Shown: piece by piece, positions 6,795-61,529 of the stretch | Position numbering within the stretch: the stretch's first letter is position 1 | Layout: every line of letters starts with the position of its first letter | Origin: Macrostomum lignano | Lineage: Eukaryota | Assembly (NCBI GenBank): GCA_002269645.1 | Contig: NIVC01000102.1 | Location: 329,950-393,949, forward strand | Reading direction: 5' to 3' | Length of the DNA stretch: 64,000 nucleotides | Made by a program: the position numbers and the translations under genes | The notes under the pieces: model-generated | What the model was told of the DNA's origin: nothing | Seen by the model: the letters and a program-made list of their open reading frames with translations, nothing else | Database searches by the model: none

Positions 6795-6884
6795 TTACTG
6801 ATTGAGTGACCCATTGGATACAACTGGGTCTACTATGCTGTCGCCCTCGCCGTGAAGCCAGTAGGTGAGTTGCTTTCCTTTACC
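6795..6884 (-). CDS. rGC constant exon 9 (terminal): [14 protein letters not shown]...NQ*
   Basis: CTCCAG acceptor at 6885-6890, conserved GKGxxxTYWL motif, TAA at 6795-6797. Not in the ORF track. Confidence 0.9.
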   Translation of the reverse strand, partial: GKGKQLTYWLHGEGDSIVDPVVSNGSLNQ

Positions 6885-9800
6885 CTGGAGATCAATCAAA
6901 GTATTCAGGTCAGAAACAGAGATTATACATATTTAAAAGCTTAAAAGTTATTCACACGTGTATAGCTCCGTACCTTCATTTCGACTTCGCCTCTAGCTGT
7001 AGTGACAAATCCTCCAATTTCCTCTAAAATCTCGTGCGTGAACGAGCTGATATGAATCTTTAGTGGAAGGCCGTTGCTCTCCATTCTGGAGGCTGTGTTG
7101 ACTGTGTCGCCAAACAAACAGTAGCGAGGCATCTTTAGGCCTACAACGCCCGCGCAGACGGGACCTGAAGATGAAATGGTTAGTCTGGATATGAAGCTCA
7201 AGACTACCGAGCACAGTTATGGCTATACGGCTGATAATTATGTAAAAAACATACAGCATATTATCTATGACTGACACCCCACAAGCCTAACTGTTCTCTA
7301 TGACTGACACCCCACAAGCCTAACTGTTCTCTATGACTGACACCCCACAAGCCTAACTGTTCTCTATGACTGACACCCCACAAGCCTAACTGTTCTCTAT
7401 GACTGACACCCCACAAGCCTAACTGTTCTCTATGACTGACACCCCACAAGCCTAACTGTTCTCTATGACTGACACCCCACAAGCCTAACTGTTCTCTATG
7501 ACTGACACCCAACAAGTCTAACGGTGACGAGATTCCCATAAGCTCAACAGTTATCATTCGACTGGCAAGTTCCAATATCAACGACAAATAACACTGGGCA
7601 AAAGCGACCTAATCGACTGACTAACCAGAATGAATTCCAATCCGTAGCTTCAACTGCACATCCGGTTTGTGACGAATTTTAAAACTGTAGATATTTTGCA
7701 GAAAGCTCAAAGCCATCCGTGAAATCTCCCTGGCGTGCAGGATGCCGTTTCGCATTGGCAAACCGGAGACAACCATGTAGGCGTCGCCAATGGTTTCAAC
7801 CTTGTAGCAGTCGTACTGTTCGATGATGCGGTCAAATAGAGTGTAGAGATCGTTTAGCAGAGTCACTACCTGAAATAGGCAGGATAATTGTATCAAATCA
7901 TTTAGTTTTTTCAATCAATTGTGACAGGAAAAAAGAAATATTATTTAGGCAGTAAGATTACGTACGTAAAGCCTAGATAGACAATAGCTCAGTCCTAAGA
8001 CCTAGATGTTCCTGATTACCGTAAGGCTAAGATCGCCGCCCTCCCAACCACCCGCTGAGCTGACAAGGTCGTTTGGAGTCGCAAATCTTCAGCAGCACCT
8101 CACCGGAGACTGAGACCCAAAGGGACTGGTGGTAGCACAACTACCGACGCTACTGTTGAAGGCTTCAGATTGGAGCCACCTCAATCAGGAAAGTGCTCGA
8201 GTCAGCCGTCGAGACCACATCAGTACAACAATTATTCATGCTTGTAACCAAGTTATTGGAAATGTAGCTATAGGACCCTCAGAAACTGAGCCTCACCTCC
8301 AGTGGGGTGCTCTCGCTAGACAGCGCCGTGAAGCCGCAAATGTCCGAAAAATAGATGGTGACAGAGTCGAACCACTCGGCGGTGACTGACTCTCCCCTGA
8401 GTAGGGTGGTGGCCACCGACTTTGGCAGCATGCAGTACAGCAAGTTCTCCGCTTTCTTCTTCTCTTCAAGGTAGAGATCGGTTCGTTTAGCAACAAGACT
8501 CTCCAAATTGTTGGAGTACTGCTCCATCCGTTTGAGAAGATTGTCCAAAATGTTGCCCGACTCAGCGTCTTTGTTAAAACGGCTGATGCGGCTTTTTATT
8601 GAGTTGAAGCTAGGCCGGGCAGCTGGGTCCTCCTGCCAGCAGTTTCTGACGGTGTTGATCAGCGCCTCGGAGCGCTCCTGGTCCGGATCGTTCGTTTCCG
8701 CGTCCAGAGTTGGTCGGTACATCTGGTTGGAGATTTCTTTAACCTTTTCCACGATTTCTGCGAAATTACGATGATGAAGAATAAATATATAGGAGCATAA
8801 CAACTTTGAGCTACAGAGAAGGTGAAATGGACCAAGTGGTGAGTTAGTCTAATTTTGGCACCAAAGAACTTCAACAAACTTGTAGGCTGACTGTGAAGTT
8901 TTGTAGTTTTACTCGTACATCGAGGTTTTTACGAGCCGTACTAAATGTAAAGTTATAAACAACTTCAGTTTGGTTGAACCGGCTGTTAGAAGATTTGTTT
9001 CAATTTAAAGCTGAATAAAATTCTCTGTACCATTGGGATCAAAGCGATATCCTATATGAGCAAGTTCTCGACTTGAGTTTTTAAAACGCAACATTCTTCT
9101 ATTTTCGGACTACGGGCATAGTTGTGATGCAAACAGAATATATTTTTAATGCTTGACCTATTTTAACCCTCCATACGCCTGTTTCATTTTGTTAAACATT
9201 TATCTGTCGAATGTCACTGTAAAATAAAAAGGATTAAGCAATAAAAAAATTGTGCATCAAAGCTTAAATCTTGCATTCCAATGTCAAAGTGTGCTGTAAC
9301 AAAACCAGTTTGTACAACTTCGATTGTATTCTACTTGGAGGCGAAAATGCTGCGAGCGATTTTTAATACTCTGTTGATGATTTTGGAATAATTCAGGAAT
9401 GCGGAATAAGTGCGCATTTAGTCACGTAAGGATTAAGCGCATTTCGAATAGGTAGAAGCTGCATACGGAATCGGTTCTAACGCAGAGGCTCTCTCTAATC
9501 CCGTGAATTTAGACGCTAAGTAGGGCCATTGTAAATCATAAAGTGACAGGAATGCTCCCAGATATTGGAAAGCACGCAAAAGGGAAGGCAATGGCTTTGC
9601 CTTTTGGGCTATTTTTAACTCTCTGGCTTCGTTCAGTCTTGAGCTCTTCATGGGATTGCTTCGCTGCTTTTAGATATAATGCGATGGCTTACTGACCGCG
9701 CAATGCGATTGCTCTTTGAGGACAGCAAGTTTGCTTCGCGCTAACTTGGATCAGCTCTACTAATCCAATACACACCATCTATCTATCTATCTATCTATCT

Positions 9801-61108: not shown

Positions 61109-61110
61109 AC

Positions 61111-61529
61111 AGGCCTTCCCAGTGCCAACTTTCCTGGTCAGCACATCCTCCCAGCTCAGCGAGCCAGCCAACTCGAACACGCAGTCGATGCCGTACAGGG
61201 CACCGGATATCCTGGTGCACCAGTTCATGAGCGCCTGGCCCAAGCCTCTCAAACTGGGGATGTCATCTGACGGCTGGTAGGCCACCTCTCTGAACACAAA
61301 GGTCACCCGCCGCCAGCTGTTGTCCCTCATGAACACTCGAATGATGTCTGGCAGCACCTCCATTCGAAACGGGGTCACCCGGATCATTCTGGTGCCCTGT
61401 CTGTCGTGAAAGACGTCTCGCACGGCTCCCGGCGTGACTTCCGGTATCCGATTGTGAAATGTGAACGGGATGAACTGCGTGATTGCGTAATCAGTCACCG
61501 GTCCGAAAAATGCGTGAATGCAGAGCTGC
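61111..61529 (-). CDS. rGC variable cassette D, internal exon (first exon not located)
   Basis: CCGCAG acceptor (phase 2); QLCIHAFFGPVTDYAITQF...EVTPGA...MIRVTP...DNSWRRVTFVF...NWCTRI...KVGTGKA; phase-1 GTGAGT donor at 61110. Confidence 0.82.

Follow-up and report, generated by a model that had tools for sequence, protein, structure and literature searches.

The 64,000-nt stretch of Macrostomum lignano DNA analyzed here (assembly GCA_002269645.1, contig NIVC01000102.1, positions 329,950 to 393,949; hereafter the window) carries on its minus strand a ~55 kb gene for a natriuretic-peptide-receptor-type receptor guanylyl cyclase (rGC). This is very probably one rGC gene with four alternative N-terminal ectodomain cassettes and one shared body that comprises the transmembrane (TM), pseudokinase and cyclase regions. 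The cassettes, designated D, C, B and A, lie in that order, in tandem and on the same strand, end in a common phase, and are followed by a single set of ten constant exons (16952-6795). A rough translation of the gene matched M. lignano guanylate cyclases with 99% identity. The usual view of receptor guanylyl cyclases assigns one ectodomain and one class of ligand to one gene. Here, a single gene would swap the half of the ectodomain that holds the NPR-A hormone-contact residues and leave the signalling body unchanged. The cassette exons are as follows, with a slash marking the splice site.

61111..61529, minus strand: cassette D exon 2; phase-2 acceptor ccgcag/G CAG CTC, phase-1 donor GCC T/gtgagt, intron from 61110.
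55637..56405, minus strand: cassette C, single exon of 769 nt (256 codons plus 1 nt); donor GCT G/gtgagt, intron from 55636.
35479..35876, minus strand: cassette B exon 1; ATG at 35876, second ATG at 35768, hydrophobic leader, phase-2 donor TCC AA/gtgagt.
32015..32370, minus strand: cassette B exon 2; acceptor ccgcag/T GCC, phase-1 donor TCT G/gtaaaa, intron from 32014.
27780..28098, minus strand: cassette A exon 1; ATG, signal peptide, phase-1 donor CTG G/gtgagt, Pfam ANF_receptor match.
25967..26389, minus strand: cassette A exon 2; phase-1 acceptor cccccag/GC CCG, phase-1 donor CGG C/gtaaga, intron from 25966.

Each complete cassette corresponds to roughly the first 210-220 mature residues of an ANF-receptor (periplasmic-binding-protein type I) ectodomain, and pairwise identity among the cassettes is just 12-20%. 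Cassettes A, B and D consist of two exons each and C alone of one; the wording "variable first exon" used in a preliminary description of this DNA was thus accurate for C and not for the other three. Cassette A totals 742 nt (247 codons plus 1 nt) and cassette B 754 nt (251 codons plus 1 nt, counted from ATG 35876), which together with C and the partial D agreed with the lengths reported before. An ATG and leader are present in A, B and C, the signal peptide of C being MLASKSAAAILLLCLCLSAAVTA, and for D a leader was seen on D exon 1 of a paralogous locus, L003. Cassette B is intact, with its ATG, leader, both splice pairs and an open frame; its exon 1 scored E 7.5e-25 with the cassette hidden Markov model (HMM) and matched the database proteins P0121 and P0123. 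Exon 2 of cassette A matched residues 59-199 of protein P0001 with 100% identity. Exon 2 of cassette D is an intact open reading frame (ORF) that matches the cassette HMM at profile positions 104-202 only, and it is 43.6-47.0% identical to the D cassettes of paralogous loci L003 and L004.

The cassette-final donors are GT donors in phase 1 in all four cases, and a single acceptor, preceded by a pyrimidine tract and reading CCCCTTCAG/TC GTG GTT CTC TGC with 16952 as the first exon base, is available to them. Joined to this acceptor, the cassettes read EIR-L-VVLC (A), DYS-V-VVLC (B), KLA-V-VVLC (C) and GKA-F-VVLC (D). The spliced products are 1163 aa (A), 1167 aa (B), 1172 aa (C) and partial (D), and all are open to the single stop codon at 6795-6797, which ends every joined frame. 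When read anew from the sequence, the donors at 25966, 32014, 55636 and 61110, the acceptor at 16952, the common phase 1 and the four open joins all proved to be as first described. The internal intron of cassette A is likewise in phase 1, and those of B and D are in phase 2. Because the acceptor of A exon 2 is in phase 1, the donor of C, B or D could also join 26389 in frame (for example C, A exon 2, constant region), whereas hybrids through exon 2 of B or D would shift the frame because their internal introns are in phase 2. No hybrid-cassette protein was found among the database matches.

The constant exons begin at the shared acceptor and run to the stop codon.

16841..16952, minus strand: constant exon 1, with the shared phase-1 acceptor; its Cys aligns with rat NPR-A Cys213.
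15265..15827, minus strand: constant exon 2, remainder of the ANF-receptor ectodomain (together with constant exon 1, Pfam profile positions 181-352).
13912..14660, minus strand: constant exon 3, TM helix, low-complexity juxtamembrane stretch and first part of the kinase-homology domain.
12791..12959, minus strand: constant exon 4, kinase-homology domain, with HGNLKSSN instead of HRDLKxxN.
12082..12093, minus strand: constant exon 5, micro-exon of 12 nt, GACAGTTCTATG, between AG and GT; inserts R-QFY-D into the kinase-homology domain.
10106..10264, minus strand: constant exon 6, kinase-homology domain.
8297..8757, minus strand: constant exon 7, last part of the kinase-homology domain, coiled-coil linker and first part of the cyclase domain.
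7626..7869, minus strand: constant exon 8, cyclase catalytic domain.
6974..7164, minus strand: constant exon 9, cyclase catalytic domain.
6795..6884, minus strand: constant exon 10, C-terminus and stop codon.

Pfam recognized in this part the second half of ANF_receptor PF01094 (3.1e-29, profile 181-352), PK_Tyr_Ser-Thr (1.2e-40) and Guanylate_cyc (6.2e-70), and the domain order, ANF_receptor, single TM, pseudokinase and C-terminal class III cyclase, is that of a canonical rGC. The replacement of HRDLKxxN by HGNLKSSN indicates that the kinase-homology domain is a pseudokinase. The cyclase domain carries both motifs, with the Glu and Cys that are expected to specify guanine (GTP). The micro-exon is probably an alternative one: it is present in proteins P0128 and P0002 and skipped in P0001 (SYR-N-KLW), and the frame is kept either way.

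Only one constant set is present. All 1,049 six-frame ORFs of 30 aa or more in the window were scanned with profile HMMs; only the six cassette exons matched the cassette profile (E <= 1e-22; next best 0.038) and the constant set was found once. When the window was searched by tblastn with full-length rGCs, constant exons were confined to 6798-16962. Neither search revealed a further constant-type or cassette-type exon in any frame of the window, which upholds the earlier claim that none lies between the cassettes.

The cassettes are divergent versions of one fold region, and their homology was established most clearly at the level of profiles. Pfam assigned ANF_receptor PF01094 to cassette A (3.5e-13) and weakly to B (0.0019), and gave no match for C and D. 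When each cassette type was aligned across paralogs and compared with the N-termini of non-Macrostomum rGCs (HHalign), the profile-profile probability was 99.8% for A, 99.0% for B, 98.8% for D and 97.1% for C. Along its whole length, the A-isoform ectodomain aligned with NPR-A of human and rat (E ~1e-58) and with NPR-C. This alignment puts the cassette/constant junction at rat NPR-A residue 209 and equates the Cys of VVLCA with Cys213. A Cys is also present in each cassette, 24-55 residues ahead of the junction, at the place of NPR-A Cys164, which we take to be the disulfide partner of Cys213; given this pairing, the join between variable and constant parts would probably have to be sealed by a disulfide. 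The contacts of atrial natriuretic peptide named in one structural paper on its receptor are D62, Y88, R95, A111, E119, Y120, D160, R162, F165, F166 and E187. All of these named residues are N-terminal to residue 209 and hence in the cassette part, which bears out the earlier placement of the peptide contacts in the variable portion.

Gene models that join cassettes to the constant region were found for all four cassette types, at this locus or at its paralogs. The Mlig_3_7 annotation, whose proteins carry BOX15_ tags, was derived from RNA only (StringTie, TACO and a mapped de novo transcriptome, with TransDecoder ORFs; PMC5730564). The window encodes one of these proteins, P0128 (BOX15_Mlig000254g3, PAA90871.1), exactly, with all 1172 residues and the stop codon, through the following exons.

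56405-55637, 16952-16841, 15827-15265, 14660-13912, 12959-12791, 12093-12082, minus strand: P0128, cassette C and constant region, first six exons.
10264-10106, 8757-8297, 7869-7626, 7164-6974, 6884-6795, minus strand: P0128, constant region, last five exons.

The exact match means that the junction 55637-16952, predicted in the preliminary description, was already present in a transcript-derived model of this locus, and the C join is in use here. Cassette A joined to the constant region is modelled at this locus by the UniProt/WormBase entry A0A1I8HYF3 (P0001), which begins at an internal Met and is thus without a signal peptide. P0001 differs from the window translation over a short stretch at ~8600-8640; a local frameshift in the older assembly, or in the model itself, is the apparent cause. 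Joins of B and D are in use at paralogous loci. Cassette B with the constant region is represented by P0124 (BOX15_Mlig013975g1), which agrees with L004 at 100% identity in its B exons and first constant exon, and cassette D with the constant region by P0007 (BOX15_Mlig029578g1), from locus L003, to which an A-constant protein, P0132, also maps. In the protein pairs P0004/P0005 and P0003/P0006, identical constant regions follow A-type and C-type N-termini.

Four further Mlig_3_7 loci were compared with the window: L001 (NIVC01001747), L002, L003 and L004. L001 is a second copy or allele, 90-97% identical with introns included and collinear with the window in the same order. It carries ~13 kb of extra sequence between C and B (L001 21529-34703) relative to window 45134-45478, which indicates that the two locus copies differ by large intronic insertions or deletions. 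The order D-C-B-A-constant is kept in L001, L002 and L004. Locus L003 has both exons of D, then A and the constant region, and tblastn and HMM searches of L003 14326-20613 detected no B or C cassette between D and A; cassette number therefore varies among the paralogs. Between the window and the older paralogs L002, L003 and L004, nucleotide alignment was obtained in exons only; exon 2 of B, for example, still aligns to L002 and L004 at the nucleotide level, and the introns do not. Across the loci, the cassette-final donors are all GT in phase 1, and the acceptor t[tg]cag/t[ct] GT[GC] GT is conserved.

A bootstrapped neighbor-joining (NJ) tree recovered each cassette type as monophyletic across loci (99-100/100). 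Cassettes of the same type are 30-52% identical across loci, compared with 12-20% between types within a locus, and cassette B is 44-51% conserved across three paralogs. Constraint was gauged by the retention of ORFs and splice sites and by exon-only alignability, synonymous sites being saturated at 30-52% amino acid identity. The monophyly of the types and the pattern of identity indicate that the four-cassette array arose before the loci were duplicated and has been maintained by constraint.

The same junction occurs in other phyla, where the comparison covered sets of isoform proteins. RefSeq isoforms of "atrial natriuretic peptide receptor 1-like" from one species are 100% identical after residue ~225-330 and 10-55% identical before it, and the break lies exactly ahead of (V)VVLCA[SD]xDSVR, at the junction used in Macrostomum. 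Isoform sets of this kind were found in the following taxa.

Mollusca, eight genera: Mercenaria (four N-termini), Mytilus, Ostrea, Saccostrea, Argopecten, Mya, Haliotis, Biomphalaria.
Other phyla: the nemertean Lineus, the hemichordates Glandiceps and Ptychodera, and the hemipteran Homalodisca.

The Haliotis gene extends over 320 kb. In an NJ tree, cassettes of one species never cluster together (0/100 bootstraps). A mollusc "beta" clade was recovered in 4/100 bootstraps, and the long-branched Macrostomum types were not placed relative to the "alpha" and "beta" classes; given the 4/100 support for the beta clade, orthology of individual cassette types across phyla is not claimed. Tentatively, and with a little less than even confidence, we propose that half-ectodomain cassettes are an ancient, bilaterian-wide diversification of ligand recognition in NPR-type rGCs, with at least two old classes ("...AR-I/VVLCA" and "...(V/I)G..YS-V/VVLCA"), retained in flatworms, molluscs, nemerteans, hemichordates, some insects and probably nematodes (gcy-28), and that vertebrates use separate NPR genes instead. 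Were this so, one gene would give several receptors for different peptides in different cells. Its isoforms might also form mixed dimers, since the dimer interface of NPR-A presumably lies within the swapped part as well.

The preliminary description had proposed that the cassettes are joined alternatively to one module. The models for A and C at this locus and for B and D at the paralogs, the retention of order and phase, and the common junction in other phyla all speak for this proposal. Several observations weigh against the reading of four functional alternative cassettes. The splice evidence throughout consists of gene and protein models, and A-type joins are found in UniProt/WormBase models only, with none in the transcript-derived BOX15 set. 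No database protein of this locus joins B or D to the constant region; cassette B is represented here only by stand-alone models that read through its donor (P0121, P0123), and for cassette D of this locus no database protein was found. Exon 1 of D (signal peptide and ~100 aa) was not found in 61570-64000 or in the 6.3 kb farther upstream in L001, by tblastn with D exon 1 of L003 at E <= 50 or with the cassette HMM. The D cassette of L002 (1738-2166) runs into a stop after GSMTADP, before the conserved donor position, which may reflect either decay of the cassette or an error in the sequence. The C isoform (P0002, 47 sequences), when modelled with AlphaFold2, showed alternating strands and helices at low confidence (mean pLDDT 60); in Foldseek its whole ectodomain aligned to NPR1 and NPR-C (E ~5e-23) but with a TM score of 0.41 and an rmsd of 21 Å, and we regard this result as weak support for the fold of the C cassette. 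The acceptor of A exon 2 is good, in phase 1 and in frame, yet the exon is skipped in the transcript-derived C, B and D models, and the logic of the protocadherins, whose variable exons are without acceptors, fails to explain this skipping. Finally, no shared motif was apparent by eye, without a formal motif search, in the 120 nt upstream of the ATG of 11 cassettes.

Some of these points would also fit an array that is only partly functional at this locus, in which A and C are used and B, D or both are decaying relics of an ancestral four-cassette array. The missing B-constant and D-constant proteins, the missing D exon 1, the premature stop in the D cassette of L002, and the loss (or original absence) of B and C in L003 are what such decay would leave. 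However, B has an intact frame of 1167 aa here and is conserved in three paralogs whose introns do not align, and B joined to the constant region is transcribed at an L004-type locus. In exon 2 of D, moreover, the ORF is intact and the donor is the consensus GTGAGT. The Mlig_3_7 annotation kept dominant isoforms only (TACO isoform-frac 0.75; PMC5730564), and absence from the BOX15 set is therefore weak evidence. On balance, we consider decay of B or D at this locus unlikely, although it is the alternative that best withstands the data.

The choice among four functional cassettes would probably be made where transcription starts. Each cassette would have ahead of it its own promoter, or a spliced-leader (SL) trans-splice acceptor; a given start would yield a pre-mRNA whose cassette-final donor joins the constant acceptor, and the downstream cassettes would be spliced out with the intron, the arrangement known from clustered protocadherins and UGT1A. 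The resulting receptors would vary where the NPR-A ectodomain has its hormone contacts and have the same cGMP output, so the gene probably gives cell-type-specific or ligand-specific receptor variants. Docking/selector RNA pairing was not indicated: in a crude duplex test that paired the 250 nt downstream of each cassette donor with the 300 nt ahead of the constant acceptor, the energies did not improve on those of shuffled sequences (z = +0.9 to +1.7). The locus poses a concrete splicing problem, namely how the in-frame exon 2 of A is skipped when transcription begins farther upstream.

With the same architecture, the choice could instead be post-transcriptional, with a long transcript from upstream of D, SL trans-splicing that sets the 5' end, and cis-splicing thereafter. 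Trans-splicing is common in this species, where SL trans-splicing affects 38.8% of Mlig_3_7 genes and multi-gene precursors make up ~7% of assembled units (PMC5730564), and an AG lies 12-20 nt upstream of the start codons of A and C (ggcag/aaagccggaaaaATG and ctacag/acag/tatcgctaagcgcaATG). However, chance alone would place AG dinucleotides near an ATG, and the Caenorhabditis elegans precedent, gcy-28.c/.d, employs separate promoters. We judge a post-transcriptional choice to be improbable.

Two further explanations would remove the array altogether. The cassettes could be remnants of tandem rGC duplicates that are without their 3' parts, with the C-constant models arising by chimeric assembly or rare read-through. 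M. lignano has many near-identical gene copies, and the RNA-seq mapping behind Mlig_3_7 permitted up to 1000 multi-hits per read (PMC5730564). This explanation is very hard to sustain, as the variable/constant pattern was assembled independently at four diverged loci, the identical junction appears in independent NCBI annotations of at least 12 species in 5 phyla, the donor phase is conserved, and the cassette types predate the locus duplications. A misassembled scaffold, in which the cassettes do not truly lie upstream of one constant region, can be all but dismissed: the window is ~34% tandem repeat and hard to assemble, but the independent contig that carries L001 is collinear with it in the same order, and the order is kept in L002 and L004 too.

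A single gene with alternative cassettes resembles the clustered protocadherins (Pcdh alpha/gamma) and UGT1A. These likewise have tandem, same-strand, homologous 5' units upstream of one constant set, a start codon in each unit, a unit donor that joins the first constant exon, and a division into variable recognition and constant output. Their units, however, are single first exons without an acceptor, whereas three of the four units here have two exons with an internal acceptor, that of A being in frame. The swap in those systems takes place between domains, and here it takes place inside one folded domain (at ~NPR-A residue 209) that is probably disulfide-bridged. The array here, moreover, has only four units. 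In Dscam1, mutually exclusive exons also encode homologous extracellular recognition segments that are chosen one at a time, but these are internal exons behind a common upstream exon and are selected by docking/selector RNA pairing, whereas here each cassette starts the protein.

Among rGCs, the vertebrate NPR-A, NPR-B and NPR-C are alike in domain order, and NPR-A and NPR-C in full-length ectodomain alignment. Vertebrates obtain different ligand specificities from separate NPR genes and are not known to do so from cassettes of one gene. The nearest published precedent found is the C. elegans pair gcy-28.c/.d. The.c form is broadly expressed and the.d form AIA-specific, from separate promoters, and, judged by the primers used, the two forms have start codons of their own and share the 3' end (PMC9249223; PMC3842693). 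Like the gene described here, gcy-28 is an rGC with isoforms, promoter-specific in its case, and one Haliotis match is named "gcy-28-like" in RefSeq. The likeness lies in isoform-specific start codons and, if the cassettes have promoters of their own, in promoters; two promoter-specific forms have been described for gcy-28, compared with a four-member array conserved across phyla here.

The literature searched, whose coverage was incomplete with most subscription journals outside it, contained no description of a cassette array or of alternative first exons or promoters in rGCs or NPRs. The earlier remark that no description of this layout in rGCs was known appears to hold for the cassette array and has to be softened in other respects, gcy-28.c/.d having been published and isoforms being present in RefSeq and GenBank. 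With isoforms already in public annotation, the raw fact is not new; the conserved, multi-cassette, half-ectodomain-swapping rGC architecture appears to be undescribed. If the isoforms differ in ligand or in cell, the effective rGC repertoire of many invertebrates would be several times the gene count. Orphan invertebrate rGCs such as gcy-28 would then have to be de-orphanised isoform by isoform, and the vertebrate split into NPR-A, NPR-B and NPR-C could be read anew as cassettes turned into separate genes.

Several minor features of the window were also noted. An Rfam scan of the window returned no family at the gathering score. A GC-rich ORF of 241 aa lies downstream of the gene (861-1583, minus strand) and had no Pfam match. 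Long tandem-repeat arrays start 8-208 nt downstream of all the cassette donors (61110, 55636, 35478, 32014, 27779, 25966). Overall, a tandem array begins within 250 nt of 9 of the 15 gene donors; for random positions in introns the figure is ~25% (binomial P ~0.004, post hoc). Such donor-adjacent arrays were also found in L001 and L004 and not in L002. They may simply be minisatellite growth in introns. The intron between cassette A and the constant region contains a long terminal repeat (LTR) retrotransposon remnant (18671-21341), whose LTRs of 249 nt each (18671-18919 and 21093-21341) are 100% identical. Minus-strand ORFs lie at 19020-21107 and 18971-19837, and the internal ORF weakly matches aspartyl-protease and PNMA/gag-like Pfam families. 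The element is absent from the 90-97% identical copy L001, which indicates that its insertion was recent.

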